Of a stretch of 64,000 nucleotides of DNA, positions 16,301 to 42,825 are shown piece after piece. This DNA is from Bigelowiella natans CCMP2755 (Eukaryota; Protista; Cercozoa). The position numbers were made by a program, and so were the translations under genes. The notes beneath the pieces were generated by a model, which saw nothing but the letters and a program-made list of their open reading frames with translations, was not told the origin of the DNA and did not search any database. Numbering within the stretch: the first letter of the stretch is position 1; each line of letters starts with the position of its first letter. The DNA lies in contig ADNK01002630.1 in NCBI GenBank assembly GCA_000320545.1, positions 1 through 64,000 on the forward strand, written 5' to 3'.

Positions 16301-16429
16301 GAGGAGGACATCGACGCGGAGAAGGTTAGAGCGGAACATTTCGAGGCAGCGCGGAAAGAAAACCCCCCGCGGATCACCGAAGAGATGGTGCAGTGGTACA
16401 AAAACTTTCAAAGCGAATCGCTCGCGTGA
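13333..16429 (+). CDS. AFG2: Double-ring AAA+ ATPase, AFG2/Drg1/SPATA5 subfamily; join(13333..15267,15467..16429), ~965 aa
   Basis: D1: GPPGTGKT, IIFFDEID, AATN, ALRRPGRMDRE, HGYVGADL. D2: PSAMREV..VPKVSWEDVGG, GPPGCSKT (the CSKT variant typical of AFG2/SPATA5), VKGPELFSMYVGESE, MDEVD, LRPGRIDR. The GAG|gtgaga donor at 15267 and ccgcag| acceptor at 15467 join the two ORFs in phase 0. Confidence 0.92.
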
Positions 16430-17535: not shown

Positions 17536-20500
17536 CTACTGCAGATTGATTTTGAGCTCAGATTTGGCAGCCTCGATGACCTGCACAAGGTCGACAATGT
17601 AGCGGAGCGGCACTGCTTTGGGAAATCCCTTTTGGAACCAAGAGTAGGTCTTCAGCGCCTTGCCGTCCAGCTCCGCGTGCTCCATGAAGTCTGCCGCCGC
17701 CTTGGAGGGATCGTGGGTGCCCTCGACGAGAATCGTGGCGATGGTTGATTGCATCACTGCGAGCAGAGCTTCGAGGGTCGCATCGTCAGCAATCTCCTTG
17801 CAATCGAGAATGTCAGCTTTGATCCCCCGCGCGCGCTTCGCGTCGATGGGATGCTTGTAGGACATGTGCACGTCTTGGAACCTCGACTTGACGAGCACCG
17901 ACCGGAGCGTGGCCCAGAGCGAAGCCACGTGCTTCAGCCGCACCTGCTGCTCGATCGTCTTCGACTCCATTGCGCCGGCGGCGTCCTCCATCAGCAACGT
18001 CTCGCGCATGTACGTGGAGATGAGCACCTCGCCCAGATCGCCTGGGGAGGACACCTTGGACGACGATGACGATGCTGATGTCGTAGCGGTAGCTGTCACA
18101 AAGGCAATGACTGTTTCGAGGAGCTGCAGGCACTTTAGCGCCGCAGCGCCTGACCGAAGCTCGCCGAGAATGGAATCGCGCATGTCCGAGGTCAGCTCAT
18201 CCTGAGGAACGCGCCGAGCAATGGCCGCCACATCAATCGCGTCAGCATCGTCGGCGTACTGCACCGCTAGCGAGCTGGTCTCATGCGCATCAACAAGCGG
18301 CTTGCCGATGAAGTAGGTGTCCATCAGGTACTGCTGCGCGTTGTCAAAGTTGTACACAGAGGCTCCCTCCGCGGTGTGATCGACGCACTGCTTCATCACG
18401 AACGGGACGAACCGGCCCTCCAAATCGTACGAAATCGCCTGCGTCTGCGTGAGGAACCGAGGGCTGACAAACGACGCTGCCGCTGCGGCTGAAACCGCGC
18501 CCCCCTGCCCGGCAGACGAGGCGATGTGGAGAAGCTCCTGCCCCGTGTTCCGGAGGAAGACCGCGACGAGGGAGAGGAATTCGTTGTGTCTCTTCACAAG
18601 CTCCATAGTAATGGCCGCCGCACAGCGGCCTTCGTCGCGGTCTGACGCCAGCAGCAGCGTAATGGGAGACGCCTCTGAGACGGAGATGTCGCGGAACTTA
18701 TCAGGGATACGCTCGCCAACCTCCTCCCCCGCATCGGCAACGAAGTGCTTGATCCCTGGCCATGCAAGCTCCCAAGCCTTAGAGTAGCCCTGCAGCGCCT
18801 CGTAGCACGCACGCTTCTCTCCGCTGCCCTTCGCGTACGCTTCGATCGCGTCCTTGACGGTCAGCTTGCGCGCGGATTCCATATCCAAGGCGCGCGTGAG
18901 TCGCGGCACCAGCATCGTTTGGAACCGAAGAACATCGGGGAGGTAGCGAAGAGGGCGCAGCGACTCCTCGGCGGAGAGGAACCGAGAAAGCACCGGGAAC
19001 TTCGCTGAGTCTCCGATGTCCCCACGCCTCTTCGCGAGCGCGGCCGTCGCCTCCTCGTCGCGGCCAAGTTGAGCGGCGAAGTGGCCGAGCGAGAACGCGT
19101 GCCGGTACCTCCATAGCTCAGGGGCGAGCAGCTTGCTCTCCTCCGCCGGCAGCGCCTTGGTGTCTAGGCGCTCATTGAGGTCGTCGGTGAAGAGTGTGAG
19201 CTGTGGGTTAGGGCTGGGCTTTGAGGCATCTCGCAGCTGCTTCAGCAGGATATCAATCTCCACTTTGCGCTGGCTGACAATGCTTTGCGCAACACCGGTT
19301 ACGGAGTCGATGACGATCTGGCGATGTCGCTCGGTCCCGAGGACCCCCCAGTCTTTCATCCACCGGCGTTGTGCTTCCAGCAAAAACCGCCTCTTCGTGT
19401 CACCTGACTGCTTCATCTTCTCCTCTGCTACTTTGGCCAGCGCTACCTCCTCGTCAATGGCCTTGGGAGTCTTCGTGATAAACCTTTCGCCCTCCTTCCA
19501 TTGCGGCAATGCTTTGAGCTTCGCCATAGCCTCTCTAATAGTCTGTTTGTCGATGCTCCACCTGACGAACGAATGCAGCATGTACATAGTCGCGCCACCG
19601 AGTTCCCCCTTCTCGTTTTCCATTTTCTTGGGCGGCGGTATCGCATTCTTCACGAACTCGTGCGAGGCCAACACTGCCTGCAGGCCCTCCACGGTTTTCG
19701 GCCCGAGCTTTCCATCAACGTTTAACTTGGCTTCGGCGAATGCTTTGCCGGCGCCGGCGTGTCCAGGTTTGGGCAATCTATGGTTGACGAAAGTCTGCAT
19801 CGCTTTGACGTCGGCCTCCTCCATCTCCGCAACCGTGAGGTCGGGCCGGTACCCCGTCGGAGCGAGAAAACGATCGGCACCGAGCACGAACTTGAATGCC
19901 CTGCACGCGGCGCCGGTTATCTTCTTCGAATCCACGCCTTCGCTCGGTTTAGGGCAATGGTACACCGGCTTGACGATGCGATTTCCGGGAGCGTTCTTCC
20001 AGACGTCGCCGTCATCGTATTGCACGGAATACGTTCCGTCGCCGTTGTTGCGGACGATTTTGCCCATAAAGACGCCATGCTCGTTCCTAAATTGAGCGCC
20101 AACGCGTTCTCCAGCGGCAAACTTGGTCTTGATTCCTACCGGTTTTGGTTGATGTCAGTGCGAAGTCTGCTGCGGGGGGAATTGAGTAGCTTCGGAATAA
20201 AACGCAGTGGGAGAATGAATCCTCAAAATGCCAGGAAAAATGATAGACAATTATAAACCAAAACCACAAAACAACGCCATACGGCCGAGCTCACCGTGAA
20301 TGCAAAATTCAAGAGAAGAAATCGAAAGCAAGAAAATAAGCGACGAAGACATCCTCGTCATCACTCTTTGATTCTCACAACTGCTCGATATCAAATCACA
20401 AAATACGCCGCGGACGTCGATCATCTTCTATCGCCAACGCTGCTAGAATTGACCTCCCGTCGTGGCAGCCCACATCATTCAAAATCGTCTTTCAGTGAGG

Positions 20501-22320
20501 AAAAATAAAAAGGAAATCCAACCTGTCAAATCGACTTTACTGGCCTTCGCCTTGGCGTCAGCTATAACATCCGCAAGGGTCGGCATTCCTCGCGTTTTCT
20601 TCTTGCTTTTCTTTCCTTCCCTGGCCTCTTGAACCCCTCCTTGTTTTGCCTCGCCGCTCCCAGCGCTCTCGAAACCTCCAACACCTCCGCCAACGAAACT
20701 ATTACCAAATCCACTACCACTTTTATCACCACTGCTCGCAAATGGGTTAGATCCGCCGCCACTCCCAAATCCGCCACTGCTGCTGCTGCTGGAACCAAAC
20801 GGGAGCGAGGGGGCCTTAGCCATGTTCTCCTCTAGCATTGCCTTCAATATTTGATCCTCGTCAATCGGCTAATAAACAGTCGAGTCATCACCGGGCCAAC
20901 GTGAACAGGGAAGCAGGCAGCAGCAAAATCGCGAAGATTTCAACAACTCATAAAATGTTTGGAAACGCGCGTGCGCGCGCACACTTGCACCCCCTCACAT
21001 ACAGGGAGCGAGAGAGAGAGAGATAGGGAGAGAAAGAGAGAGAGAATTTGTGCATAGCACACAAACATGATGCAGAAACACGGCTGCTCGTCCTCGCAAG
21101 ACAAAAAAGAAAACCGACGCGGAAGGAAAGAACAAACCTGCTGCTTTAACGTGGCGGTTGTTGCCTTCAGTGCCTGGTTTGATATTATACATAACTCAGT
21201 GAGATTACATGCCATTCTAATCGAAACACGATCAATGGGAGCGAATATCGTTATTTGGTGGCTCTTGCGAGGAATAGGAGAGATTTTGTATTATGTAAGC
21301 AACCTCCTTCTCTTCTTCCTCCTCCTCCTCCTCCTCCTCTTCCTCCTCCTCAGCTTCCTCTTTCTCCTTCGGGGGAGGCCCCGTATCGGCATTCTCGAAG
21401 CACCAGTTGGCAGCTTGGCCGACGTCGCCATTGCAGGCCATCAGGCCGCGGACCGCGTGATGCTCCGCGATCCCCATCATCGTCAGCTGCGGAGCCATCG
21501 ACTTGTAGAGCTCTCTCTTGGCCTTCTCCTCGGCCCTCTTCTGCTTGGCCAACGCCCTCTGCCGCCTGGCCTCGAGACGCGCCCTGTGAAGCTGCTCGAG
21601 CTGTTGGCGGTACTTCTGCATTGCGCCGAGAGCGGCCTTTTCCTCCGGGGTCAGCCCTGCGTACGGATCGTTGTTATTCTGGAGGGAAGAAAGCTGCAGA
21701 TTCGAGGGGAGCTGTATCGTGCTCCCGGCCAATCGCGAGAGCACGCTTTGCGCGAGGAGCTCGGCGTCCTCGAGCGAGATCGCGAGACTCCTGGCCAGGT
21801 ACGAGAGGTCTGTTTCAATCAGGCCGAGCAGCTTTGCCTCGGGGTCAACAACCTGCGCGTTTGACGAGGAAAGCTCGCGGTTAGTAGGAAGTCGCTAGGA
21901 GGATCTAGTATCAATAGTCCGCTCGTCGATGACTGACGACTGCGGAGTGGTTTGTTTTGGCGACGGATTACCTTCTGCAATCCTACATCGCTCAAAATCT
22001 TGGTGGCAGCTGCCTTCCACGCCTTCGCATCCACGACCGCTGACGACGCGTAAAGAGTGGCGGAGCAGGACAACCTGTAGGGCACATCGATATTGCCCCG
22101 ACAATTAATGGGCTCTGTCAAGAATGATGATCTCTCGCAGCATCGGCGTGTGTCAAAGTGTTGTGTGATAAGAGAGGGCAGGGAAGAGGTCGGTCTACGA
22201 AGTGAATTCGAGCAATTTTGAGAATTCCCCACACCCTTTCGCTCCCTCTTTCTGCCGCTCTCCTCCTTATGCCGCACGCGAAGAAGCATATGCACGCGTA
22301 TATATTTACATATATCTACA

Positions 22321-22362
<42 letters not shown>

Positions 22363-24895
22363 ATCTATATGTGTATAACATCAAACAAACATGTATTATA
22401 TGTTGCGATGCAGCAGTACCGCATCAGCGTCTCGACATTGGCGTTATAGTTCCCGCTTTGGCTGCGGAGGCCTCGTTGCGAATAGGCCCCTGCGCCAACA
22501 GAATTGCTGATAAACGTGAGGAAGAACGGCTTCTTAAGGGCCTTGGCCTGATTGAATTGCTCCGTCTGCCTTGTCCAGTCAAACAACTGGCCGTTCACAC
22601 CGACGAGGATGAGGTTCGCCTGGATTTTGTGCTGCGCCTGAAGCTTGGGATCAACCTGGGGGATAGGTCGTTTTGTGGTTATGTTAATTACTAGTGCGTT
22701 TGAGATACGCCTGGTGTGCTCTTTTTGTGCATCTGGAAATGCGTGGGCGAGTGAGGATGGAGATGGAAGATCATGGAGAATGAAAAATGCCAAGCACGCT
22801 CAGCCTGGCACGGTACTTGTTCTATTAGTATTGTCACTATCCCCCCTCCCCCCCCAACCCCGCTCACTTCCTTCACGCGACTACTATAGCTATCACCTGC
22901 TCAATAACCCCTTTCCGATTAAACTGAATGCCGTATTTCTCCATCGAAGGAACTTTCAGATGAATTAGCCCTTTGCTGCGCGCGGCTAGGGCCGTCTCGA
23001 CGTCATCAAAGTGCGGCAGAGCAAGGTTTATATCTATCTCCTGGAACTGCTCGATATTCGAGCCGCATTCTGCTGGGTATCCGGTATAGATAAAAGCATT
23101 CATATCTTCATAGCTATCACCTTCAAGTGCCACGCTCGAAACGGCCGTTTGCATCTGCTGCTCAGTTGTTGGGAAATCCGCTTGGAACTGCTGGGGGCCT
23201 TCCAACACCTGTCATGGCCAAAGACGGCGTGTGTGCGGAGGATGGGGGGGGGTGGGGGCGGTGGAAGGGACAGTCATGCACATCATCACGGTTCAGTATG
23301 GAATTTGAAATCACTCTCGAGGCACCGTTAATTTCTCCAATTCTCAAAAAACCGAATCAAATAGAAGCTACTTCAGTCACAGGATACTGCGACATCTTGT
23401 CTCCTCCTCCTCTCTTCGTCCTCCTCCTCCTCCTCCTCCTCCTCCCCCTTCTACGACTACTACTGCTACCACTACTACTACTACTAATACAAATGATTCT
23501 TCACCTTTGCTGGAAACCAATCAACGCAGCCGCTTTCGGCTTTATTCGCTACATAGCACCGCATTCCGCTCTGGGGAACGATGCCGTGGAACATCGGCAG
23601 CAAGTATTCCGGCACCGCCTCCGCTTCCTCCTCCCCATCCGCGTCGTCCTCTGCCTCCGGCGAGGAGAGGGGGGGGGGATATTGCAGCTTCCTCTCATCG
23701 AGCAGCTTCCTCTCGCCCTTCTCCTCATCCTTGCCATAGAATCTACACGTAATCTCGTATTTCCCCCCTTCTTTAGGACCCTCGACGGCCGTAACCTCTG
23801 CCTCATGGTAGATCCTGGGGTGCTGAGCTGTGGCGAGCTTCTTCGATTTGCAGAGAATCTTCTCGCCGATTAGCACTGGGGGAGGCTGCTTTTTCTTCGC
23901 CTCGACGGCCTTTCTTTCCGCTTCCATACGCACTTTCACTTCCAAGGGGGGAAACCTCTTGTAAAGAGCGGTTAGACCGGCTGCAACCTGTGGAGGTGGG
24001 TGGGGGGCAAAGGGGATAAGGATAATGATGTTACGAGGCGCGGCGAGGACAGCAGCAAGAGATCAGTCAGCATTTTGGCTAGAGAGGGCCCAGAGGAGCC
24101 CCACAATCAAACACAACTTTTGACACGCTCCCAACAATACACCACACACACGCACATACACGCACATACGCACGCGCACATGCACACGCGCACACGCAAA
24201 CCATGTAGCACCCGGTCGGTACATATAGCCTGTTTTTTACCTTCTTGAGGTCAAAGACAGCGGTCCGCACGAAGGAGAGGACTTCATCGCCTTTCGCTCC
24301 GATGGCGACACCGGCCACTTTCGCAGTCAGACGCTTTGCCAGCATCTGAGCCATGCCGGGATTTTCGCGGAACGCCAGGTGCTCCCCAGCCTTGCTTCCT
24401 GATGCAAACGCTGCGAAGAGTTCCTAAAGGGGGCGGAAATAGGCAAAGAGAAGGGGGGGGGGGGGGAAGGGGGCAGAGAACAAAGAAATGAGGGAAAACG
24501 CCGATCGAAAACAACGGTTATCATTGCGCCAGAAGTATTTCCCCCCGAGCTCTCCACCCCCCTGAATCTGATATCCTAATCCAAAGGAAATGCAATCCTA
24601 CCCTTTCTTGCTCGGAGAAGAACTGGAACTTCTTCTTGGGGTCCTCCACAACCATCGCAGTGAATTTCCGGGCGTTCTCCTTGGCGTAGTCCGGCAGCCG
24701 AGGCATCGATTTAATGAGGAAGCACTCCTGGAAAGCCGCGCATAACAACGCGAGCTTCAATGGGCGCAGATCTGGGGCGGGTGGATCCTTTTTCTCTTCA
24801 GCTTCCTTCTTTTTCTTCTCTTCCTCTAAAGCTGCGCCTCGAAGTTTTTGCTTCTCGGTGGAGAGCCTGAGAGGCAATATAAATACATATATATA

Positions 24896-24934
<39 letters not shown>

Positions 24935-25827
24935 ATATATATATCTATGTGTGCATGTATTTGTATTAGTGAGCGACGATGGTTGATGCTAGTAGTGGCA
25001 AGGTCGCAGCTTAGTCATAGTGATGAATGATGATCACAGCGACGACTACACCTATTTTGCGACTGTTCATACTCGAACGCCCTCCATTTTTATTTTGGAA
25101 TGCATTATACACACACACACACACACACACACGCACACCCACACGCACACCCACACGCAAACACAACTACACACACGTGGATAAACATATAATACAGTGC
25201 TTCAATAGCACGCTTTGCGCGGAAAAATAAGATCAAAGGCCGAGAAGAATCAAATGCACTAATCAGCCGCAGCTCTCTTCGTATTACCCTAGTTTCTTGC
25301 ACGTGTGCACCCGCAGGTCCTCCAGCCTCTGTCTAGTTATTGCTGATTTCTGCGTTACGACTCGCACGTGCCGAGGGTTCATCGTCTGCAGATTCACCTG
25401 CCTCATCCGTTGGATATCGAGCTTGTACTTGGCGGAATTAACTTGGAAATCAACCGAGGTTGCGCCTGTGATTCGCCCCTTCTCGATTTGCAAGTTGGTT
25501 TCAAATGGATATCGTTTCCATCCGGCGCCGTCCTTCCACTCCCAATGATTGACTTCCATGGTAACTCGGCCATTTTGCGCTGGGGTATTCTTCACCTCCC
25601 GGAAGATCAACTCGCCGTAGCTACGTGCCTTAAGGACCTGCAATGTCGCTCTAATCAATTTAGTTGTTTTGATTGACGCTTTTTACGTGGCGCTGTGCTT
25701 GTGCTCCAACATCGAGCGAGGAATACATAAAAATCGTATAATATAAATCGTATAATATATATATATATATATATATTACGATTCTACTCTCTATCTCTCT
25801 CACACACAGCCACCTATAATATATAAA

Positions 25828-25905
<78 letters not shown>

Positions 25906-28900
25906 ATATGGCGTTTTTTATTTATATTACCGATGATTTTGCTGTGTTTTTCTCCTGCTCGATTGCAAGTGCCGTTGCATTCTTAATCTCCCTCTCCACT
26001 GCTGCAATGACCCGGCCAAACCCTTCCTTGGCACGAGGGGCGAGGTCAGACACCAACGCGGCATGGATCGCCCGGAAAGTCGTCGAGTCTCTGAAAAGTT
26101 GAGAACAATTAGGAGGAAGAAGGACGAAGATAAGGGCGATTCAAACGGCAGCGAAGGCGATGTGGAATGCCAAGGAATCAAGCATGCCTGCCCATGTCGG
26201 GGCGACGACTCACCTGAATGGCACCAGCTCTGGCATCAAATCGTCGAAGGTAAACCGGACAAGGCCCTCGCTCTTTCTCGCCCACTCAACAAGCCACTTG
26301 GCGTCAGTGAGAGGGGCGGATCGAAGCGCAGTGTGAAGCAGCTTTTGCCCGGCGATCCGTGCGGTGGCGTCATCGTGGCCCTCTTCGGATGACAACTCGC
26401 TCGCGACGTTTTTCACGCATTTCAGCACGTACCTGTCGTAGGAGGCCGATACGCGAATACACACACACACACAAACAGAGAGATAGAGAAAGATAAAGAG
26501 AGAGTCCAATCACTTTCACAGAAACTCTATAGATCATTCAACGCAGAAGCACAATCACGACAACATCGACGAGCTAAGCAAATCGCACGTTCGCAGAGAA
26601 GGCGCCATGCCCGAGGCGCCGCATTGGCAGATGATCGAATCCAGCTGCTCCGATAGAGCGAGAAGGTCCGCAGGAATGCTTTCCTTATCAGCGCTGCCGA
26701 CATGCGCGACAAGAGCGGATGCGAAGAACTTGACAATGTGCCGCAGCTTCGCAATAGCCAAAAGCACACTATCCGGCGACTTAAACTGCTTCTTCACGTC
26801 CAGAGAGAGCGCTCCGGCGATTTCTTTCGCGGACGTCTTCGCCAACGCGAGGGCCCCGGAGAGCGAGGAGGGAGGGGGCGCGCCAGCGACCTTTTTGACG
26901 TCCTCCGCCCCGCCTCCTTCCGCGAGCAGGCTCTCGTGCATGGAAGCAAAGTTGACCGAGAACAGGTTTCCGATGGCCTTGGCCTTCTTCACGGAGCCCT
27001 GGAGGCACTTTAAGATCTGCGCGCGCGCGGTCTTCCGAAAGGCGGGGTTGGCCAGCTCGTGGAGGGCCGTCAGGAGGCACACCCGCGCGGCGTGGCTTGA
27101 GACGATATCGATGGAGGAGCGCTGAATGCGCTGCCCCGCCAGCGCCTTGAGGAAGTCGCGCAGGAGGTCCTTGTCCTTCATCATGACCCCGCCATCTCCC
27201 AAGCAAAGCTCGAAGATGTAGTACTCCATAAACCGCAGCGCCGAGTCTTTGAGCTGCTGCTCGGTCGCAACTGATTGCTGCCTCACCGTGAATTCCTGGT
27301 CCGGAACGAGCGTCTTGGAGCTCAGTTTTTCGCCGGTGACCGGCGAGATGTCGCTGTCCTTGAGGTAGTCCTCAATCGCCGTGCGCTCGTAAGTCTTCCC
27401 GTCTCCCTGAAGCACCACGGGCTCTTTGATTTCCTCCAGCGTAATCGGGCAGCGGAAATCGTACTCGACCAGTTTTCCCCGGAGCTTTGAGAACATGTCG
27501 ATGACCGCTTTGAGCGCCTTGGAGGTCCGCAATTCGCGGGTGGCCACGGTGGCCAGGGTCGCGAGCGTGTGCTTCGGCGCTACGCGCAACGGCACTGCCA
27601 CGTCGCGCAGGAACGTAAACATAAATGTGAGCTTTGTGAGCTTTTGGCGAACGGCGGCGGAGGCCTTCTGCGCCTGGTCTTTCTCCGCAGCTTCCAGCAT
27701 CGCCGAGGCCGTCGTCTGCGCAGCCTTGAACATTCGAATCCATTGCCCGTACTGCGCGATCTCCGTCCAGTTTTTCCGGGACTCCGCCAGGGTATCGAGG
27801 GCGATGCTCAGCACCTATATGCGGCGATAATGTGGATTAGTTAGAAAACAGCCGAGCTGCCCAGGCTCGAGACGTACACGTTATTATTACACTGCGGCGA
27901 AGGGATAAACGCGACTAAGAAAACGAATAATCCAACGGCAACAACCATCATCAAAAACATGCATCTAAAAGCCAACACACGCAGTATTGTTATGAAACAC
28001 ACCTCTAGGTCGAGAGCCGGGCCAGCCTGCTTTGCCTCGTCAATGTGCTTTAGAACGGCGGCCTTGCACAGAGGCACCGCGTTGATGAGCCCCATGTAAG
28101 AAACCACCATCGCCTCGCACCTCCAGAACAAAGCGTGGATCTCGGCGAACTTCGTCATGTTTTCGCCTCCGTTTTCCAGCCGCAATATCGTCCAGAGAAG
28201 CTGGGCTTGGTCTTCTCTACTGAGAGACTGGCTCGCGCGGCACCGCATGCATGCAAAGTCGTGCACATAGCGCCGAAGCAGCTTTTCCGGGATGCTGCCG
28301 TCCAGGCCTTGCTGGAACTGCATTCGCTTGACCTGGGCGTCGAGGGCTGCGACATCTTTCCCCTCGCCGGTCCGCGCCGTGGAGGCACGGAAGCTGTCAA
28401 TGGCGTTGTGCACAAAGAACGAGAATGGGAACTTCGACTCGAAGGAGGAGCCGAGCCCGTCCGAAGTTACTTCCACCTTTCCGCCCCGCGAGAGGGGCTG
28501 CTGCGCGCTAGAGGCAAATGCGTCCGCGAAGGATCGTCGGTAGAGGTAAAACCAGAGGCTCCGAACCTCTTCGTCGTTCAGAAGCTTGAGTCCATCGTTC
28601 CGGTCGGCGTGGGAGAGGAGTTGTGCAAACCCAGCCGCGAGAGTGTCGCGGATCTGCCGGTGCAATGCTGCCTGGAATGACCTCTCCACGGAGCCGCTCG
28701 TTGCAGCAGCCATCACATCGAGCTTCAGGTTGGACTGGGAGATTAGTCTCTTGACGGTATCCTCGAGCGCCGCTACCAGGTCGGTGTCATCTTGGAGAAG
28801 CTTCATCAGCATTCGTATTTGGCCTTGGACGTCAGTCACGGTGCGGGATTTTTGGTATGCCATGCGCCCCAGAGCGAGGCGGAAAGTGTTCAGAAGGGCG

Positions 28901-28927
28901 CTCGACACCTGTTTCGAATATACGAGG

Positions 28928-28964
<37 letters not shown>

Positions 28965-33304: not shown

Positions 33305-33341
<37 letters not shown>

Positions 33342-36300
33342 GCTTACACATTGTCCGGTGTGATACACGTGTATGTTGAAATCAAAGTTAAGAAAATAAT
33401 GTTATGGCGAGAATTCTTAGTAACGAGCGATTTTGTATCGTGTATAGATTGATGGGGGGACGGCGAACTCTCAAATGCACAACCCACAGGTCAAACAAAC
33501 GCCCCAACTCGCGCCAGTGGTTCCCTCGCTCTCGAGAGGGAGGCAACAACTCACCTTGAGATTTTCCGGAAGAAACTCGCCCTGCATCGAGCCGTCGCAG
33601 ACGATTTCCTTGAACAGGCCCATGCAGTTGCAGGTATTGACTTCGTCCAGGAAGACGACGATGCGCTCCTCCCTCGTCATGTAGCTCGCCTCTATGATCG
33701 CCCTCCGCATCCACTTGACCACGTCCTCCGCCTCCATCCCGCCGTGGATGTTGAGCGTGCGCAGGGGGAGGCGCAGAATGCCGCAGAGCTGCCGCACGAG
33801 CGAGCTCTTGCCGCAGCCCGTCTCCCCCATGATCATGATGGGAAGGCCGTTTTTGAGGCGGAGCTGGATGGCCAGCATCTTGAGCAGGTTGTCGATGGTG
33901 ACGACGTAGGTGGGGTCGGGCTTGTTCCGCCCCACCGAGTTGCGGAGCTGGTAGCCCTCGAGCTTGCGGAGGATGGCCATTCCCTCCTCGGAGGACATGT
34001 CGCGCCAGTCGCGGTCCAGGGACGTCTCCAATTTCCCGCCCAGCGACATCTGCTGCTTGAGGTTTTCGAGGAGGCCGCGCTCGATGAACTTGCGCACGAA
34101 GTTCTTGTTGAGCGCCAGGATGGAGAGGGCGTCTACTCCTCCGTGGCCTTCCACGCTTGGGAACCACAGGCAGATGGGGTGGTCCGTCTCGTCCCATTTG
34201 GTCATGTTCTCGAAGCGCGAGGCCATCAAATCTGGGTTACCGTTTTTGCTCTCAGCGTCGCCTTTCTCGTCCTCCGCGGCGGAGTCGGCGGGCCCTTTCA
34301 CCTTGCCCTTCTTCAGTTTTTTCCGCCCGACAGCCCCGTATTGCCATTCCCGGGGGACGGCGCGCATGGAGAAGTCTTTCGAGGTGGCAATTAGCATATC
34401 GGCCATTGCGTTGCGAAGGCCGTGGAGACCTTCCAAAAACTCGTAGACGTGCGGTTGCGTGAGCGAATAGCCGAACTCGGGGTCCATGCCGAAGAAGGCG
34501 TCCTTCATGTAACGCACGAAGTTGTTGAAGATCGAGAAGGACGGCGCGTCGTTGGGCTGAGTCTTGTTCTCGGTGAAGCTTCTCAGGAGCTCGAAGGCCT
34601 CAGCAGGCTCGATCGCGCCGCATGTGCGCGGGTTCCAAAGCTTGTCTTGCTCCCAAGTCGCGGATTTGATGAACTTCCGCTCTCGGAAGGCCTTCAGAAA
34701 GCTCGCGACGTAGTTTAAAGGTTCCATGGAGTCGTACTGATGCAGCTTAAGCTTCGTGCACTCTTGGTCGGTGAACGTGACTGTGCGCTGCTCGAAGGTC
34801 TCCACCCCTACCGCAAGCCGCCTTTCCGGTAGCAGCGCGCAGACTTGCAAGGCGTTGGCGGTCCTGTTCCCAGAGCTGTTTGGGATCTCCACGAAGAACG
34901 TGTCCTTCGTCCGGCGCGCATACACCGCGCATGTCGCCGGGTCCTTGAGCACGCCGACGATGAGGAGCTCGAAGAGGCACGTATTCGCGTCCGCGGGAAT
35001 CACATGGCCGACGTCGAGATGGATAGCGTTGCTTTCTCCTCGGGCATGTCCGAAGCGGGAGAGCCGCCGCACTAACGTGCCGGCCGTCGAGCTCTCGTGG
35101 TAAGGGACGCGGCGGTATTTTAGCCCCTTCTCCTCGCGCTGGCGGTCGGCCACGCTTCGTAGGATATAGCCGGTTTTGCCGCCGCCGTTAATGTTGGAGG
35201 AGATGGCCACCGTCTCGCCGTTGTGCTGCTTCGCTGCCTCGGCGACTGCAGTGCGCAGGGATTTCCGATCCAGCGCGCCGAGGGGAGTCGCGTGCGCAGA
35301 GAGGGAGTTGAGGATGACCTGCCGCGGTTTCCCCGAGACGAACAGCAGCGAGGCGGAATCGCGGGTCCGATAGCGGGCCAGCATCTCGCGGAGCCTCGCC
35401 AGCACCGAGACCTGCATTGCGTAGTCGAGCTTGTGCACGTCGGCGAGGCAAAACACGCACCGGCCTAGTCCGTGGGATTTGGCGGCCAGGAACCTGTACA
35501 GGATGAGCTCGACGTCCTCGAGGCTAGTGCCTTTCGTGCAGAACAGGATCTCTCCTGGCTCGGGCAGTCGCCCTCTGCGGACGTAAACTGAGAGCACGAG
35601 GTCCAGAACAGCGCTGGGAGACTCCGCACAGGACACCCACATCGGCAGGGTTTGCTTCTTCCCTGCTCCCACGCCCTGCATACGCTCGTCTTGCGAGAGA
35701 TGCAGCATATCCGTCTTGTTGCGGGAGTCTGCGCCTGGCATCGGAACTCTCCGGAACGTGACGGCTGATTTCGACGCCGAGGCGGCGCCTTCCTTCGCGT
35801 CCTTTGCCTTCTCCTCCTCGCTCGGGGCCATAATCCATCGGAGGATCTTCCCCACGGCCTCGAGCTGGTACCTATTCGTTTTCGTCCCCATTGCGTTGTC
35901 GCCGTCTTTGATCTCGGACGTGCGCGAGCGCAGCTCGCGACGCCAGACGGTGTGCATGGCGCGCACCCGCTCAACGTCAACGCGCGAAGAGAGCAGGTGC
36001 AGTAGAGCGCAGAACTCTTGGATGGCCTCGTACGATGACCGCCCGGTGCTGCCGGAGCGCGAGCGGACGCGCTTGCGCTCTTTCTTCAGGCCGAGGGACT
36101 CGATGAGCGCGGTCGTCTCGGCCGGGCGAGGCGCACCGCACATCACGCAGCGCTTTTGGAACGTCTTGTTTTTGAACCGACACGAGGAGCACCGCCAGTG
36201 ATCCATGATCGCCGCAGCCGCCTTCTTGTCGGCCTCCTGCTTTCGCTCGATCGACGATGGGGATCTCTCTAGATCGGGCGGGGCACTGCCATCGGCCGCG

Positions 36301-39300
36301 TTGTCGTCCCCCTTCCGTTGCGCTTTGTTTACACTTGAGGACTCATCGGACTCAAGACCTGGGGGCTTCTCCATTTCTTCAATTAGCCGCTTTTCCTCGA
36401 GCTCCTCCTCGATGTCGATTTTGGACCGCTTTCGCTCCCCCATGATGTTCTGAATCAAAACCAGAAGCTCGCGCATGCGGAAGTAGTTCAGGTAGTAGTA
36501 CTTCTCGCGCATCTCGCGAACGGTCTCCCTCCACGCTGCGAGCTCGGCGCAGAGTCGCGTGTACTCAGCCTTGAGGTTGCGTAGCCCTTCCTCGTCGGTG
36601 GTGAGGAAGATCCTCTTCGTGTACTGCTGGTTTTGGAAAGCGAAGTGGCCGGATTCGTACAAGGTCACAACTTGCGTTTTGATGTCCACAGCGACTCGCA
36701 GCTGCTCCAAGAACGCGCTCACCTTCGCGCTCATGTCGTGTTCCTTCTGCATCTTCTTCGGGATCTCGGTCATTATGACGCGAGACCTCAAATCCATCAG
36801 AAACTCCTCGCTCTTTGTTTCGATAGCCTTTTCCTCCGGCGCCCTCTTCTTGGCGGAGGCGTTGACAGCGCTGACCTTTTTGTCCCCCCCTCGCAGCTCC
36901 TCGTGCGGCTCGAGGGCGAGCACCGCATCGGGGTTGGGGTCCGACTTGAGCACGATGACGCCCGCGTTGAGGAAGTGGAGAATGTCCTTGCAGGCTCGGA
37001 CCCCTGCAGACTCGGTCTGCTTGGTGATGATGAGCTTGAAGGCCGCGAAGTTTTGCTGCACCGTAGTGAGGTGCGCGACTAGATCTCCGTTTTGGAGGTC
37101 CACCGCACGGAACGTCTCGAAGAACCCGGCCAGTGATGCGTATGGTGGCTTGTTGTACAGGAGCTGCAGCATGGCGGTTCGGACCGTCGCCAGACTCCCC
37201 GTCGCGTTGATCACATTGGCCTCTGCACCCGAGTCGAGGATGAAGGAGCGGTATTGGTTAAATTGACCTTGATGCTTCTGCATTAAGATCCACTTCACCA
37301 TGTCTTCGCTCGCAGGCTCTGCGAGTATGCGCAAGAACTCGCACTGCGCCGCGGTCAAATCGGAGCCGAGGTCCTTCTTGATCGGGGCGAGGAGAGACGA
37401 CAGCGAGTTCAGAGTGAGGGTGCTCCACTGCTTCTGCAGCGTGGCGGACAGCTCGAGCAGCTTCGCGTACACGTGGTCCTTCGACTCGTCTGTCTCAAAC
37501 AGAGACCCGAAATCATACTTGCGAAGTTTCAGGATGGCGGGCAGGGTGATCTTGAGTTCGGAGAGCACCGCAAAGTCCTCGAGCTGTACCAGCGCCTTCT
37601 CGTGCCAGCTGCTCTCGCCCTCCCCGCCCTTGCCTTCCGCGCCGCCGGCGCCGCTGCTTTTCTTGCTCTCCACGGCGTCTCCTTCCCCGCTCGCGCTCAA
37701 GACCATCAGCTCGGCGACGGAGTCTTCCATAGTGTTGACTTTGCCAAACGTTTCGATGAGAAGAGGCACGGACGCCTCCCCCCGTTTGACGCTGTCGAGA
37801 AGGGACTTCCAGCGCTTTTTGATGGCGGGAACGAGACGATCCATCACGCTTTTGTGAGAGAGCGGATGCTCTTTCATTAGGTTTTCATGGTCTAGTCGCG
37901 CGATCTGATCAGCAGCCGAACCGGCCCCCTTGCCGTCCTCCTTTTTGCCGTCGCCCCCCGCAGCAGCAGGTGCGACGAGGGGGAAGACAGAGGGCTTGGG
38001 GATGGTAGACGCGGACATTCCTATCGACGTGAGAATCACCTCCTTGCCTACCTCTCGCCACATATTCAGGAAAATGAGAGATCGATGCGCCGCGTAGAGC
38101 CAGGCGATGTTAGCGAGGTGCTCGCTCGGCATCATCTTTGGGAGCAGGGAGAGCACAGAATTCACGGCGAACTTGTTGTACCCCTCGTTGAGCTTTTTGA
38201 GCTCCTCTGGCAGCTTCCCGACGATAATCGGGACGCCGCAGTCGCAGAACTGGCGCAGGTACACGTTGATCTGGCCGAGCGCCGTGTCAAATTTCCTCAC
38301 GACTGCAAGCCATCCATTCACGACGTCCTCGGTTACTCCGCTGAGCCCTAGAAGCTCGAAGAGCTTGAGCGCATTGTCCTGATTTCGCTCGACGCTCATG
38401 AGATCTCCCAGATTCATGGTGCCTTTATCAGGCGCCAGCTGTTTGGCGGCGGACCCCATGACCGACTTCACGTGCGCTAGCACCTTGTTGAACGCTGTGT
38501 GACTCATCTTCGCGTCGCCGCTGCCATCGAGCCCGCGGGTGGTAAAGATTTCCAGCCAGAGCGCGGATGAATCTAAAATGCGGCCGAGGGAAGGCGTGCT
38601 GCCGCCCGCGCCGAGGGTGAGCGCATGGAAGAATTGGTGGCTGAGCGGCGAGTCTACTGGCAGCTTGTTTAGCGTCGCCACTGCAAATTGGATCTCATCT
38701 ACGTTCCGCCTCTCGGCCATTGCGCCGAGTAGCTTCGAGCCGACGTTTATCAACTCCCGCGCCAGGGCGGGGGCATACTTAAACGCGCCGCCATTCCGGA
38801 TGCCGAGGCCGCATAAGGTTCTAACGACATCTTTGGGAAAGCCCATCATCGGCCGACAGCGCTTCAGCTCAAACAGCAGCGTGTCGGAACTCGCGGCGTG
38901 GTAGACGGAGGCCTTGCAGATCTTGTCAATCAGCTCGCAGTTGCGACTGAGCGCGTCGAGCATCCTGCTGGCCCTCTCCTCGGGCTCGACGTCCTTGAGG
39001 ACGTCTTCGGTGAAGTAGAAGCTTCTCTTCACGCTCACCACCTTCTTCAGGAAGGGCTTGGCTTGATTCCCGTGCCGAAACCACTGGTACACCGCCTGCC
39101 CGAGCTTGGTGAATTTCTGTGCCAGAGCGTCGGCCTTCTTCCTCTTGGGGTGATCCAAAGGCAGCTTCTCCTCGCCGCGCCGGAGGCACGCTGGCATCTG
39201 CAGATCGGCGTATCGGCGAATCGACACTCCAAGAACATTTATCAGCGCGTCGCTCAGCTCGGCGTCATGCGCCTCGGCGCAGTGGTTCTCGAAGGCAGCC

Positions 39301-42300
39301 TGCGCGATTTCCGGGATTTGCAGCGCGGGGAACTCCCCGATAATCCCCGTGATCTCCTTGATCTCCGCGACGCCGAAGTCGCAGCGCCGCAACCACCCGA
39401 CGACTGTCTGGCTGAGCCCCTGGTTGATCATAGAGCGGACCTCGTGGCGAGCGAGCAGCACGCGCAAGCTTTCAGTCGTTGGCGCGAACTCAACGAGGGT
39501 GTGGAGATAAGCCATGCCGATGCTCAGCAGCGCCTCGCCGGGTGTAATCCCCGTGTCCTCGGCGTCCGCCGGCCTCGCGGCGCGCTCCGCGCGCTCCTGC
39601 GCGAGGAATTGCGCGGCCGTCTGGAGGGTCTTGGCTGCCATCTGCACGATGGACTTCGTTTCCGCGGCGAAGGCCGTAGCGAGCTCCTGCATTCTCTTCC
39701 TCTTCTTTGTGCTGACCGCCTGGGGAAGGGGTTTGAGGCGGTCGGCGTGGGCGATTTCCTCTCCGTGCGCCCCTAGCGCGACCTTGTAAGTGCCGTCGCT
39801 GAGGACGTTGAGAACCAGCCCTTGGTAGTAGTACCTGCTGGTGAGGCTGCGGCACTTGAGGCTGTCTCCCCGCTTGAACCCTCGTTTACACCCCGCGTTC
39901 GCGGGGAAGGGGAGCTTCGGGAGCTTGCTGAAACGCCTCAGCACCGGCGCAATCTTGATCCAGCGGAAGTCGTTGACGTTGAGAAACCGCGCGGCGGCCT
40001 CCTGCAGCCCGGTCACTGACTTCTGGTACTGGTTTCCAAGCAGACCGGGTAGATCAAGAGCCCGCGCTAGATTCACGTCGAGGTTTTCGAGGACAAAAGC
40101 ACACCACGGCTCGGGCTCGAGGCGGAGGGCGACGTCCTCGTGGTAGACGTCCGTCCCCTTCCAGTGCGACACTTCCTTGGTTGAGTCCGTGCTCAGACCC
40201 AACGCACCCGGGATAACGAGGAGCGCCATCATGGCTCCGACGGGGGCGGGCTTGTCACCGATAAACTCCTTCAGCTTCTGCAGGCCGCTTGCTGTCAGCG
40301 TATCGCCGACTCCTCGCGAGACTTCCATATCGCCGAAGATTGCGCAGACGCGCGCCACGAAGGTTTTCGGCGTGACTAGCCCTCGGAGCACACCCTCGAA
40401 ATCGCCGATGATGCCGGCCTCGAGCGCCTCGCGCTGGGAGAGCGACTTGAAACCGTCGTAGAATTTCTTGTACTTTTTGTTCTTCTTGTTCGGGCGGAAG
40501 ATGGCGAAAAACTCCGCCTTCATCTTCTTCTCACGCCGCGGGTGGCCGCCCTCCTCCCACACCGCCTCACCTTGCGCCATAACGCACCGCCACTCGAAGA
40601 TGCCGGTTTTGCAGTTCTCGGTCTTTTTGAAGGGCAAGTCGATCGTCCCATGGTATTTCTTTGGATTGGCCCCGTCTTGCTGCAGTTTAAACTAATACAG
40701 ATAAGAGCAGCGACGGAGAGCACGGGGTGAGGAGGACCAGAGAACGGGGGTGCAGCATAACGCAAATTTGAGAATATATAATGTTAAAGGCCGAGAGTTT
40801 TTGGGAGTCTTTGTGAAAGACGTGAGAATAGAGGGCGGGGGAAACATTGTGTACTTTCTGCATAATCATCAGCATCGTCATCATCATTGCTGCATGCCGA
40901 CTTCTTTATTATCCTCACAAGCAAACTAACACTGGGAAATACTACTTCTAATACATAGACTCTCTTCTTCATCGTCGGTGAGCAAGACGATTTGCGACAT
41001 TTGCTAACATGCATATAATAAATAACAGTAACCAAAGGCAGCAGCCGGCAAGCTTAGAAGGACGGGACGATAACGACGAAAAAAGAGGAAAAAACCTTCA
41101 ATTCCTTCATCTCCCCCATCGTCGCTGGGGTTCCCTGTACATAAAGTGCACAGTCCTTGTGCTCCTGCATCCAGCTCGCGTCAATGATTACATGAAACGT
41201 CGCTTGATTCTTCGCCTCGGGGTCATTCGGCGTGTACGGCTTGAATTTCTCCACGTACTTTCCCACGTTCTCCTGGCGGACGTGCTGGCCTTTCAAGCCG
41301 TATATGGAGAAGCTTTCCCCCACGAGGCGCTTCCAGACGTAAGACCGGTACTCGGATTCGAGGTCTTGGACTGAACGGGTTTCATCGTTGGCATGATAAT
41401 TGTGAAGAAGGACCAAAAGAATAAGAAGAAGAAGAAGTGGTGGTAGGATGAGCAGGATGATGATGAAGGATAAAAAGAACAGCAAGAAGAAGAAGTAGTA
41501 GGATGAGCAGGATGATGATGATGATAATGCTACTGGCGGTATTGGTAGTACTCCCCTCATCAACCCCCCCCCCCAAAATACACCCTCTCTCCTTGGCTCT
41601 GGACAACAATACCGTAGTGCTGCCCGTCGTTTGGGTCAAATCGGTCTACTAGGCACTTTTTCCATTCGAAAGGTTCATCTGAGTAACAATAACACATATT
41701 CAATAATATCAACTCGTGATCGATCAATTGACGATAAGCGAGGCCGCACATAGCACAGCACATTCAACCCAGCGCAGCAGTAAACATCTTGAACATCCCC
41801 ATTACACCATACAAGTCGCTGTCATCATTTGGGGAAAACAATTGAGTACTCGTAATACTACTGCTACGTACGTACGTACCGCCGTCGCGCGACTCAAATA
41901 CAAGAGAGATCTCTTTCTTGTTAAGGAATTCGGGGTTGGTCTCGTCATATCCCCATTCACCCTCTGCATGTGCGTCAGGGTTTGGATCTGCCTTCAGCAC
42001 CTTCGCGTCGCCAAGGTCCATCTTGGGGCGAGCGATAATAGTTTCCCCCCACTGCCGGTTCGGATGAATAGTAGCGGGTATGAGAGGAGGAAGGGGGTGG
42101 GGCAAAGATATCGCATATGTGAGAGCTAAGCTAAAAGTCGTCACGCCAATGCTAGATTTATCTTCTCTGACTACTTTTTTTTTCTATAGGTTGACCATCA
42201 AGGAAACATGGCCACACAAAAAGCAGGAAAATCATGTGTGGAGTGAATCTTAGTTTTATTATCACCGTGTCGCCGCTCCCTCCTCGGAATTTTGAATGCA

Positions 42301-42825
42301 TTTTTTTGGTTTTCTCATCATATTGCAGTTTAATCTCTGCCCCATTGAAGAACTTACCTGCAATCACACGTTTAAAAGTTCATTTTCACGATAAAATAAC
42401 ATGTCTACAAGACCGATGCTGTTTTGCTTATGATATGCTACGGGATAGAAGAAAAGTGCGTCTTATATGAACTCTCACCAATCATCCAGCCTTCGGCCGG
42501 CTCCAAAGGAACATGGTCTGTTTTTTCTATGAAGTAATATCTACCCTGTTTCTTCTCCACGCGGTATCTAAGAAATATTTGCGGGCACTATTCAAATGGT
42601 GTGGGTTTTTAATAACAATAACATTGCTTACTCGGAGCGAGCATAGTAGCGCCAGGTCCCTTCCCACTGCTCGTTAGGCACTCCCGATGTCCTGGTAAGA
42701 GGAAGGTAATGTTTGATCGACAACAAAACTCGAAAGCCAGATTTACATATTAGACGAAAGCACTGATTCGTGTATTGCTTGCTTTTGCCGGATGGTGAAT
42801 ATGTTTTTGCTAAATTGCCTTACAT
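17536..42825 (-). CDS. RNF213: Giant RNF213/mysterin-like AAA+ ATPase-E3 ubiquitin ligase (~6,500 aa, ~25 exons) with U-box, WWE, Tudor-like, PDZ-like, UBA, ZnF-RanBP2 and PG-binding-like domains
   Basis: Ordered RNF213-family motifs: LPEPGEILFC, SNINGGGKT, IHLDV, CLFELLIVG, FFVEI, IMGETGCGKS, LNIHGG, VFLDEVNT, ICACNPYR, LVYRVHPLPESM, VSLRDVARC, IALNDALLENLFM, VGKPGTSKSLA, SYQCSPLST, LLDEVGLAEQSPHLPLKVLH, VGISNWALDPAKMNR, GLREFYS, RNFGG, YGSDFP, LYESLYDLLNQHY, PPLLNRFEKQ. The CTD reads YLPDVLRFQ, ISYDLE, GKPLV, LKHVASLW. ORFs 33471-40637, 32577-33185, 29209-32421, 27841-28908, 26555-27814 and 17536-20067 plus small exons join in frame at the GT-AG junctions I checked. The start is inferred. 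Confidence 0.93.
19560..19812 (-). other. Tandem peptidoglycan-binding-like (PG_binding_1-type) motifs within the RNF213-like protein
   Basis: DVKAMQTFVN...KLNVDGKLGPKTVEGLQAVL, followed by a second, degenerate KGELGGATMYMLHSFV; matches the VxxLQxxL...LxVDGxxGPxTxxAlxxfq pattern. Confidence 0.6.
19970..20125 (-). other. Tudor/SH3-like barrel domain
   Basis: FAAGERVGAQFRNEHGVFMGKIVRNNGDGTYSVQYDDGDVWKNAPGNRI. Confidence 0.8.
21391..21498 (-). other. UBA domain
   Basis: MAPQLTMMGIAEHHAVRGLMACNGDVGQAANWCFEN (MG[F/I]...A.RAL....GDV..A.NW pattern). Confidence 0.85.
22510..22960 (-). other. PDZ-like domain split by one intron
   Basis: LKVPSMEKYGIQFNRKGVIEQ|VDPKLQAQHKIQANLILVGVNGQLFDWTRQTEQFNQAKALKKPFFLTF (YGI loop, ILxxVNG, terminal LTF strand). 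Confidence 0.55.
25360..25560 (-). other. WWE domain
   Basis: HWEWKDGAGWKRYPFETNLQIEKG...VDFQVNSAKYKLDIQRMRQVNLQTMNPRHVR (W-W-E, YxID, MxQxNxxT..RxVR). Confidence 0.88.
27295..27465 (-). other. U-box domain
   Basis: DFRCPITLEEIKEPVVLQGDGKTYERTAIEDYLKDSDISPVTGEKLSSKTLVPD. Confidence 0.92.
29300..35660 (-). other. Dynein-like six-AAA core of the RNF213-like protein
   Basis: AAA2 has P-loop GGGKT with degenerate Walker B (IHLDV). AAA3 (GETGCGKS/VFLDE) and AAA4 (GKPGTSKS/VLLDE) are intact. AAA1, 5 and 6 are degenerate (e.g. LMLLTKNGAA, ELLTFTP). Confidence 0.88.
32420..32805 (-). other. Tudor-like domain inserted between AAA3 and AAA4
   Basis: FRIGQKVKAKYRNKKGNFYYGRISALNADGTYAVRFDDGDTDNK|VNPSSI. 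Confidence 0.8.
36123..36197 (-). other. RanBP2/NZF-type zinc finger
   Basis: WRCSSCRFKNKTFQKRCVMCGAPRP = W-x-C-x2-C-x3-N-x6-C-x2-C. Confidence 0.9.
39730..39880 (-). other. Tudor-like domain in the N-arm
   Basis: FKRGDSLKCRSLTSRYYYQGLVLNVLSDGTYKVALGAHGEEIAHADRLKP. Confidence 0.65.
40535..41220 (-). other. CBM20-like domain (N-arm), split by an intron
   Basis: ATFHVIID...ALYVQGTPATMGEMKELK|LQQDGANPKKYHGTIDLP...IFEWRCVMAQGEAVWEEGGHPRR, matching the CBM20 pattern (VTF, lyV.G, G.i.LP, FEYK, vWE...R). RNF213 is known to carry a CBM20-like N-arm domain. Confidence 0.65.

Follow-up and report, generated by a model that had tools for sequence, protein, structure and literature searches.

A giant RNF213-family AAA+ protein of Bigelowiella natans with a decayed RZ finger and putative reader domains inserted in its E3 module

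Results

A 21-exon RNF213-like gene on the minus strand

We analysed a stretch of 64,000 nucleotides of Bigelowiella natans CCMP2755 (contig ADNK01002630.1, positions 1 to 64,000; hereafter the window), which carries on its minus strand a gene for a giant protein of the RNF213 (mysterin) type whose RZ finger has decayed and whose E3 module is interrupted by putative reader domains. Chaining stop-free frames yielded 21 exons that begin with an ATG at 42021 and end with a stop codon at 17536-17538, and joining these exons by script for frame and length gave a coding sequence of 19,374 nt, or 6,457 amino acids (aa), devoid of internal stops; an alternative in-frame donor at 26559 adds 10 aa (6,467 aa). 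A preliminary description, drawn up from the letters of this stretch, had claimed one spliced reading frame of ~6,500 aa between 17536 and 42825, and we recovered both the single frame and the lower coordinate, with the start placed at 42021 instead of 42825. The GC (guanine plus cytosine) fraction is ~0.60 in the large exons versus ~0.43 outside the gene. Exons E1-E3 are predicted only; E1 and E3 nonetheless match both paralogues of the gene (contigs C3250 and C1447, see below), and the junctions E4/E5, E6/E7 and E7/E8 are confirmed because uninterrupted open reading frames (ORFs) of the two paralogues align straight through them.

To follow splicing through the 3' part of the gene, we mapped RNA to positions 20100-26099 (6,000 letters), using the raw reads of one RNA-seq run together with contigs from three more runs, each of a different further study. 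Over this interval the RNA contigs of three studies and the genome differ in zero letters. The contigs skip ten introns, eight of them as direct joints and two (23209-23504 and 24867-25287) as adjoining pieces of the same contigs, and all ten have the ends CT..AC when read on the plus strand, equivalent to GT..AG in the direction of the gene. An eleventh intron (26091-26213) is indicated by a loose contig end at 26095 that resumes at 26219, and a twelfth (21174-21303) by another such end, at 21175, whose letters are the exon 18 GAG repeat in reverse complement. This repeat (21304-21366), encoding poly-Glu, is the sole break in the RNA assembly, and it is bridged because the loose end at 21175 reads into it from the other side. 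One RNA contig of 16,738 nt runs from 21367 and holds 14,277 nt of messenger RNA upstream of 25635; since the model exons down to the same point amount to 13,942 nt, the contig carries ~300 nt more at its 5' end and extends from 21.4 kb past 40.7 kb. The preliminary description had named transcripts starting or ending within 20.1-26.5 kb as the sign of separate genes, and we found instead that all splices between 26.2 and 20.1 kb are seen in RNA. Seven studies have the gene stretch, or part of it, in apparent RNA assemblies. The RNF213-like gene is real, expressed and well delimited.

A pseudogene was ruled out by the open frame and the spliced introns, the spliced form being present in all three runs mapped. 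Some low-depth contigs read unspliced through the last intron (20136-20522; window 20108-20551), and one contig lies inside intron 22075-22419 (at ~22100-22255) and then runs into 255 letters that are absent from the window; intron retention, carried-over DNA or a chimeric assembly could account for them.

The protein belongs to the RNF213 family

Database searches, Pfam scans and fold predictions were run on single exons, not on the joined protein. Exon 6 matched solved RNF213 at E 3.5e-99 (phmmer) and had 3,489 relatives in a full HMMER scan (threshold E 0.001), exon 4 (N-arm and AAA region) matched solved RNF213 at E 2e-24, and exon 21 matched the C-terminal domain of human RNF213 (residues 4803-5077) at E 3e-8 (phmmer). 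AAA_5 scored above its Pfam cut-off, and the best identity of the AAA core to a Cercozoa protein was 53%. RNF213 has two catalytically competent AAA units (PMC7311170), and both nucleotide sites keep a Walker A as well as a Walker B motif here. On these matches we firmly assign the predicted protein to the RNF213 family of giant AAA+/E3 proteins, in keeping with the preliminary description.

No RING was found in the E3 module, the place of the animal RING being taken by a U-box. As Pfam detects a RING in only 1/32 homologue E3 modules, the RING does not define the wider RNF213 family.

The RZ finger has decayed in one of three paralogues

In human RNF213 it is the RZ finger, and not the RING, that carries the in vivo activity (PMC11549300). 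We searched for this finger with a hidden Markov model (HMM) trained on the matches to RZ in 68 homologues and detected none in the six frames of the whole window at maximum sensitivity (best E 0.5), nor did PF20173 (RZ) match any exon frame. Applied to the paralogues, the same HMM recovered the RZ finger of C3250 intact (E 3e-22) and that of C1447 in spite of the introns that split it. Pfam finds the RZ finger in 32/32 aligned homologue E3 modules, in which no columns along the entire module are invariant except the Cys and Gly columns of this finger, and 44/47 homologues possessing the C-terminal domain have it.

What is left of the finger lies in exon 15, where a segment collinear with the family weakly matches positions 174-189 of our E3-module profile and contains a single Cys (23065-23067). 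The human RZ finger uses C4505, H4509, C4525 and C4528 as metal ligands, C4516 as the proposed nucleophile and H4537 as the general base (PMC11549300, the sole source of human residue numbers used here). All four zinc-ligand positions are substituted in the remnant, and the loss of the zinc ligands is firm. The lone Cys fits either C4516 or the zinc ligand C4528, and MAFFT chose C4528; retention of the catalytic cysteine is ambiguous on this alignment. Of the 'AECG remnant' listed in the preliminary description, the decay of the finger and the 'FPT..' motif with one Cys at the collinear position stand, and the identity of that Cys as catalytic stays ambiguous. Comparison of the three copies shows that the loss of the RZ finger is confined to the window copy and took place after the triplication.

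The RZ finger of C1447 is split by two introns into three exon fragments (C1447:81500-82100; profile positions 2-12, 11-25 and 26-49) and that of C3250 lies within one ORF of 1,139 aa, intron density differing markedly among the three copies. Four homologues of 4,156-6,039 aa (P0065, P0076, P0133 and P0107) show neither RZ nor another Pfam domain in their last 1,400-1,540 residues, and BLAST detects the C-terminal domain in three of the four; they may be further RZ losses or gaps in gene models.

Extra domains interrupt a collinear E3 core

We built a profile of the RZ neighbourhood from 51 homologues and aligned it to the exons of the E3 module. Exon 12 corresponds to profile positions 54-88 (and also matches both paralogues), exon 13 to positions 110-166 (E 0.001), residues 3-93 of exon 18 to the conserved post-RZ block (E 7e-6) and residues 309-460 of exon 21 to the C-terminal domain (E 1e-26), with the blocks following in the order exon 12, exon 13, the weak pre-RZ motif of exon 15, exon 18 and exon 21. 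This core is interrupted by exon 11 (WWE), by exon 14, by the end of exon 15 through exon 17, by residues 94-183 of exon 18 (coiled coil, UBA and poly-Glu), by exons 19-20 (a low-complexity, Gly/Ser/FG-rich linker) and lastly by residues 1-308 of exon 21 (Tudor and PG-binding-like motif). Together the inserts comprise ~1,100 aa of the E3 module, to which a Tudor in the AAA region is added. Because the conserved blocks of exons 12, 13, 18 and 21 flank them in order, the accessory domains are internal and not fused to an end. A terminal gene fusion was considered as the source of the extra domains and ruled out, since they lie inside the collinear core.

WWE, UBA, Tudor, PDZ and PG-binding domains were found in none of the E3 modules of the 38 homologues scanned, and exons 10-20 had no BLAST match in 150 homologues. 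From the U-box exon to the C-terminal domain the window copy measures ~1,400 aa, versus ~500-990 aa in the paralogues and the Ectocarpus protein introduced below (~500 in C3250). The preliminary description had called the architecture unlike that of any described protein; this holds for the E3 inserts, which the 38 homologue modules lack, but not for the U-box, Tudor and RanBP2 finger, which are common to the paralogues.

Exons 13, 14, 15, 18 and 19 (24241-24423, 23505-23987, 22897-23208, 21304-21852 and 21138-21173) all begin and end in phase 0. Exon 14 is a symmetric phase-0/0 exon without a counterpart in any homologue, the pattern that an insertion by exon shuffling would leave.

Domains above or close to family thresholds

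The U-box, WWE and UBA domains named in the preliminary description were all corroborated by Pfam. The U-box lies well above its cut-off at the position of the RING of animal RNF213, and plant U-box proteins are its nearest solved relatives (E 2e-8). The WWE match, at more than twice the bits of its cut-off, covers positions 2-66 of the 67-position profile, and its nearest solved relative is the WWE domain of HUWE1 (E 1.1e-4), followed by those of DTX1 and TRIP12. UBA_7 (PF22562) scored 30.8 bits against a cut-off of 27, and UBA (PF00627) scored 18.2 bits, below its cut-off of 22.4. The end of exon 18 encodes a run of ~20 Glu/Lys from the GAG repeat.

The RanBP2-type zinc finger of the preliminary description is a near-threshold candidate: all four Cys are present and the Pfam match has E 1e-5, with 25.1 bits just under the cut-off of 27. 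The finger matches that of Nup153 in the Protein Data Bank at E 0.004, and the corresponding site of either paralogue has such a finger as well.

Tudor-like barrels and weaker candidates

Several Tudor domains had been claimed. The sequences support three Tudor-like barrels (in exons 4, 5 and 21), which match each other and the paralogue Tudor, but none of which exceeds a Pfam cut-off. The exon 5 barrel matches five Tudor families, all below cut-off, and resembles the N-arm Tudor of paralogue C3250 (tblastn E 1e-6). The first Walker B is followed by a conserved block and then by this barrel, which both paralogues lack at that site. The barrel at the start of exon 21 likewise matches the paralogue N-arm Tudor (tblastn E 3e-5). 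We used the exon 5 and exon 21 copies as seeds of an in-house Tudor HMM, which then detected the non-seed barrel in exon 4. This N-arm Tudor is common to both paralogues, where Tudor_5 and PTM_DIR17_Tudor match it, and gives a weak KOW-like match in the window copy.

The two further Tudor domains claimed for exon 14 are unconfirmed. This beta-rich segment separates the pre-RZ blocks from the RZ remnant, matches nothing in homologues by BLAST or the E3-module profile, and has no Pfam Tudor match at E up to 10; the clusters that resemble it in a language model are of Agenet/Tudor type (0.84), which is no more than a lead. A single-sequence AlphaFold2 (AF2) model contains beta strands at a mean predicted local distance difference test (pLDDT) score of 50.7 and has no Foldseek match at E up to 0.001, its weak top rows being chromo-barrel and Tudor folds.

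Two peptidoglycan-binding (PG-binding) domains had also been claimed, and we found one motif, VDGKLGPKTVEGLQA, of 15 residues and below threshold: PG_binding_1 (PF01471) matches it at E 0.08 (13.6 bits against a cut-off of 23) and PG_binding_3 at E 0.11, and language-model look-alikes of the region are PG_binding_1 clusters at 0.92, again a lead only. The first 314 residues of exon 21, modelled by AF2 without an alignment, reached pLDDT 39 and no usable fold, and residues 1-320 had no homologues in a protein search limited by its length window, a blank that means little.

A CBM20-like segment was recognized by eye, more clearly in paralogue C1447 than here; an intron splits it, and Pfam matched CBM20 in neither exon half (for the first 300 residues of exon 4 with E allowed up to 10), so that the domain is a candidate by resemblance. 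Pfam CBM_20 was found in 1/20 homologue N-arms (E 4.9e-8). Human RNF213 has a CBM20 at residues 378-515 (PMC11549300), contrary to the statement in the preliminary description that the animal protein is free of all such accessory domains. A PDZ-like segment had likewise been seen by eye, and neither the exon 15 half nor the exon 16 half of this intron-split candidate matched PDZ in Pfam at E up to 10; the domain is unconfirmed. The FG-type stretch of exon 20 recalls the FG regions of nucleoporins or other disordered linkers.

Two RZ-bearing paralogues and the wider family

A search of the genome (91.4 Mb in 3,736 contigs) found two paralogues, C3250:40545-58225 on the minus strand and C1447 ~64700-84836 on the plus strand. 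Both possess the N-arm Tudor, RanBP2 finger, AAA core, U-box, RZ finger and C-terminal domain, and no UBA was detected in either. The AAA core of the window copy is 64-67% identical to theirs and ~46% identical to that of an Ectocarpus fasciculatus protein (CAM9257784.1, P0161), which together with two further homologues also has a U-box and an RZ finger. Since both paralogues share them, the U-box, the N-arm Tudor and the RanBP2 finger belong to the base plan of the clade and are not inventions of the window copy. In a quick maximum-likelihood tree the three paralogues form one clade (98 in the SH-like approximate likelihood-ratio test), in which the end branch of the window copy, at 0.39, exceeds those of the other two (0.25 and 0.28). 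The window copy is a lineage-specific, expressed RNF213 paralogue.

One gap in the N-arm (window 36123-36600; P0161 residues 1296-1407) is filled by a RanBP2/NZF finger in the three copies and by a UBA in the Ectocarpus protein, and two modules of ubiquitin-binding type may have been swapped at this site. NHL repeats occur in the N-arms of two homologues (best E 1.4e-9) among the 20 inspected, and accessory modules of the N-arm appear to vary across the RNF213 family.

Surroundings of the gene

AT-rich introns contain (TA)n microsatellites (33300-33345 and 28930-28965) with (TG)n or (CA)n runs nearby, the exons being ~60% GC. A convergent neighbour on the plus strand (13333-16429) consists of two ORFs of 673 and 314 aa and ends ~1.1 kb from the stop codon of the RNF213-like gene; both ORFs have a classic AAA domain with AAA lid (PF00004, E 1e-42 and 3.5e-43), and the gene looks like one for a type II ATPase of the Cdc48/NVL/Pex kind. 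Its homologues in a protein search were for the most part archaeal CDC48.

Table 1. Coordinates of the RNF213-like gene, its exons and its predicted domains in the window
Feature	Position	Strand	Basis or remark
Coding region of the RNF213-like gene	17536..42021	-	Frame check, RNA joints, paralogue collinearity
Exons E1-E4	42021-41880, 41678-41613, 41370-41096, 40679-33555	-	
Exons E5-E8	33245-32670, 32439-29224, 28908-28003, 27814-26589	-	
Exons E9-E12	26432-26214, 26090-25931, 25637-25288, 24866-24602	-	
Exons E13-E16	24423-24241, 23987-23505, 23208-22897, 22655-22420	-	
Exons E17-E21	22074-21972, 21852-21304, 21173-21138, 20868-20523, 20135-17536	-	
Tudor-like barrel, E1/E2 junction (intron included)	41613..41913	-	By eye; collinear with paralogue C1447
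CBM20-like segment, E3/E4 junction (intron included)	40500..41203	-	Motif resemblance by eye, unconfirmed
Tudor-like barrel, N-arm, E4 residues 267-300	39780..39881	-	In-house Tudor HMM E 0.006, non-seed
RanBP2/NZF-type zinc finger, W-x-C-x2-C...C-x2-C	36123..36203	-	Pfam Zn_ribbon_RanBP (PF00641) E 1e-5
First Walker A, GETGCGKS, taken as AAA3	33804..33827	-	Walker B FLDEVNTC ~70 residues downstream
Tudor barrel, E5 residues 148-192	32670..32804	-	Pfam Tudor_5 (E 2.3e-5) plus four more Tudor families, below cut-off
Exon 6, best-conserved AAA core	29224..32439	-	phmmer to solved RNF213
Second Walker A, GKPGTSKS, taken as AAA4	~31630-31653	-	With Walker B LLDEVGLAE
U-box	27290-27457	-	Pfam PF04564 E 1.4e-10, 41.6 bits against cut-off 21.4
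WWE, exon 11, inserted in E3 module	25362-25547	-	Pfam PF02825 E 6.3e-12, 46.1 bits against cut-off 21.1
Exons 12-13, conserved E3-core blocks that precede RZ in homologues	24241..24866	-	Profile match
Exon 14, beta-rich Tudor/Agenet-like segment, 483-nt phase-0/0 exon	23505..23987	-	Weak hints
Decayed RZ finger, exon 15	22999..23175	-	Pre-RZ 'FPT..' motif, then '..YTGYPAECGSNIE..'
PDZ-like segment, E15/E16 junction (intron included)	22500..22959	-	By eye only, unconfirmed
UBA, exon 18, after coiled coil and before poly-Glu tract (21304-21366)	21385-21495	-	UBA_7 E 2.8e-7
Exon 20, Gly/Ser-rich low-complexity linker with FG-type motifs	20523..20868	-	Translation; RNA-supported exon
Tudor barrel, start of exon 21	19969..20130	-	Pfam PTM_DIR17_Tudor E 0.0066, below cut-off
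VDGKLGPKTVEGLQA motif, peptidoglycan-binding-domain-like	19687..19731	-	Sub-threshold
RNF213-type C-terminal domain	17575..19209	-	phmmer E 3e-8; profile E 1e-26; BLAST to 47 homologues

Discussion

On the basis that the transthiolation site of the RZ finger is gone, the U-box is the only recognizable ubiquitin-transfer element of the window copy. The reading we favour, to which we give somewhat less than an even chance, is that of an ATP-gated U-box ligase steered by readers of protein modifications, next to RZ-bearing sisters that keep the ancestral chemistry. The U-box would pass ubiquitin straight from an E2 to lysines, in the manner of an ATP-gated RING/U-box enzyme, or might act as an E4-like extender of chains; the WWE would read iso- or poly-ADP-ribose, the UBA and perhaps the NZF-type finger ubiquitin, and the Tudors methyl-lysine or methyl-arginine. 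Readers of existing marks would bring the ligase to its targets as in HUWE1 or RNF146, and the two RZ-bearing paralogues would retain the ancestral chemistry, by which human RNF213 ubiquitylates lipopolysaccharide (LPS), the three copies having divided or diversified their roles.

Several points weigh against this proposal. Ubiquitin-binding NZF fingers have the signature T-F..M (T-F followed by a hydrophobic residue), and the finger of the window copy reads R-F..M where that of paralogue C3250 reads T-F..M. The ability of the WWE, UBA, NZF and Tudor modules to bind their ligands is predicted from family membership alone, every Tudor match lies below its Pfam cut-off, and the true 5' end of the gene may lie beyond our model, given the ~300 nt of extra sequence in the long contig. 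Loss of the RZ finger is rare and not unique, three homologues with the C-terminal domain and P0107 having no detectable RZ either. The remnant still has one Cys with a His nearby, for which reason some thiol chemistry may be left. Lastly, the RING of animal RNF213 has no known bona fide substrate (PMC11549300), and an RNF213 reduced to its U-box might for this reason be a weak ligase or none.

The preliminary description had cast the RNF213 scaffold as a chassis for swappable recognition modules, in analogy to integrated-domain nucleotide-binding leucine-rich repeat receptors (NLRs), and the protein would then be a cell-autonomous immune sensor and effector that recognizes cell wall, ADP-ribose, ubiquitin, methyl marks and C-termini and that coats and ubiquitylates ingested or invading bacteria. 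The antimicrobial, coat-forming activity of the human ligase and the positive selection on its N-terminus (PMC11549300) would fit, as would three diverged paralogues with differing domain sets in one genome, the sporadic UBA, NHL or CBM_20 modules of other homologues (the Ectocarpus UBA lying at the zinc-finger site) and the weak PG_binding_1 signals. Yet the RZ finger that human cells need to ubiquitylate and coat bacteria (PMC11549300) is lost here, and the sole microbe-directed module is the 15-residue sub-threshold match, with PDZ unconfirmed; as these two facts weaken the model, and as the secure inserts (WWE and UBA) would read host modifications rather than pathogens, we consider it rather unlikely. 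What stands of the chassis idea is that readers appear to be inserted in an RNF213 E3 module. A derived version, in which the three paralogues form a diversified cell-autonomous defence set of this bacteria-eating alga and the RZ-less copy is sensor or adaptor for RZ-bearing coat builders, reading infection-induced marks (ADP-ribosylation, ubiquitin, perhaps peptidoglycan) and nucleating or directing coats, is in our estimate quite improbable; if true, it would amount to a sensor/helper split as in paired NLRs, and immunity built on RNF213 would date far back in the evolution of eukaryotes.

The confinement of the RZ loss to the window copy, with sisters that keep the finger, and the well-conserved AAA core (64-67% identical to the paralogues) could also point to a catalytically reduced adaptor or regulator, a reader-rich scaffold that assembles together with the RZ-bearing paralogues, or recruits targets to them, while its U-box is minor or idle. 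We judge this improbable, as the U-box is far above its Pfam cut-off and matches active plant U-box proteins, which argues that interaction with an E2 is retained, and hetero-oligomers with the paralogues are so far hypothetical. Conversely, the exon 15 remnant might itself be a working zinc-free nucleophile that keeps transthiolation and possibly non-lysine ubiquitylation: the register 'GYPA-ECG-SNIE' / 'GHPY..ECG-RPME' puts its Cys at the position of C4516, and a His follows 18 residues downstream versus 21 in the consensus. However, none of the four metal ligands is kept, the RZ HMM does not score the segment at all, MAFFT favours the other register, with the Cys as zinc ligand C4528, and the metal-site mutation H4509A abolishes the function of human RNF213 (PMC11549300), making such chemistry very unlikely. 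That two or more adjacent genes, or a mis-assembly, were taken as one gene could be argued from E1-E3 and the junctions E3/E4, E5/E6 and E8/E9, which are predicted and lie outside the mapped reads, and from the break of the RNA assemblies at the GAG repeat. This we regard as barely credible, given that the C-terminal domain lies 3' of all inserts with the conserved E3-core blocks interleaved in order, that the 16.7-kb spliced contig spans from 21.4 to beyond 40.7 kb, that the loose end at 21175 reads the repeat across the break, that three studies agree in every letter over the mapped 6,000 letters, and that the frame is open through 6,457 codons.

RNF213 has been studied almost only in vertebrates. 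Our literature searches turned up no publication on RNF213 architectures outside animals or on an RNF213 that carries WWE or Tudor domains, and what appears to be new is the combination of RZ loss with internal insertion of reader domains, not the U-box nor an immune role. The known work of vertebrate RNF213 is done by the RZ finger (PMC11549300); the window copy is a natural RZ-less variant with a good U-box and with both ATPase sites intact, and through it the RING/U-box position of the chassis can be tested directly on its own. Together with its two RZ-bearing sisters it makes up a compact comparison set in one organism. The inserts also reveal surface sites of the E3 module that would tolerate insertion of whole domains, one of them as a single phase-0/0 exon.

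With animal RNF213/mysterin (6TAX, 7OIK, 8S24) the Bigelowiella protein shares its giant size, an N-arm, a dynein-like AAA ring with two Walker A/B units, a collinear and significantly similar E3 module and C-terminal domain and, possibly, an N-terminal CBM20. It differs in having a U-box for the RING and a decayed RZ finger, in its gain of a WWE, a UBA, several Tudor-like barrels and a RanBP2-type finger, and in being ~1,250 residues longer than human RNF213. Its closest counterparts are the two paralogues, which match it also in the N-terminal exons, and the Ectocarpus protein; all three have the U-box at the RING position, but they keep a canonical RZ finger and are without WWE. U-box E3/E4 ligases such as plant U-box proteins, UFD2 and CHIP share the zinc-free U-box of canonical sequence, which in them is joined to ARM, TPR or Ufd2 core domains, whereas here it lies within an RNF213 E3 module. 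HUWE1, and also TRIP12, DTX and RNF146, likewise set readers of WWE and/or UBA type beside a ubiquitin-transfer domain on a large or modular scaffold. Neither their scaffold nor their catalytic domain is homologous (HECT or RING-DTC there, a U-box here), and they lack an AAA ring; the likeness to this group would be one of working principle, not of membership.

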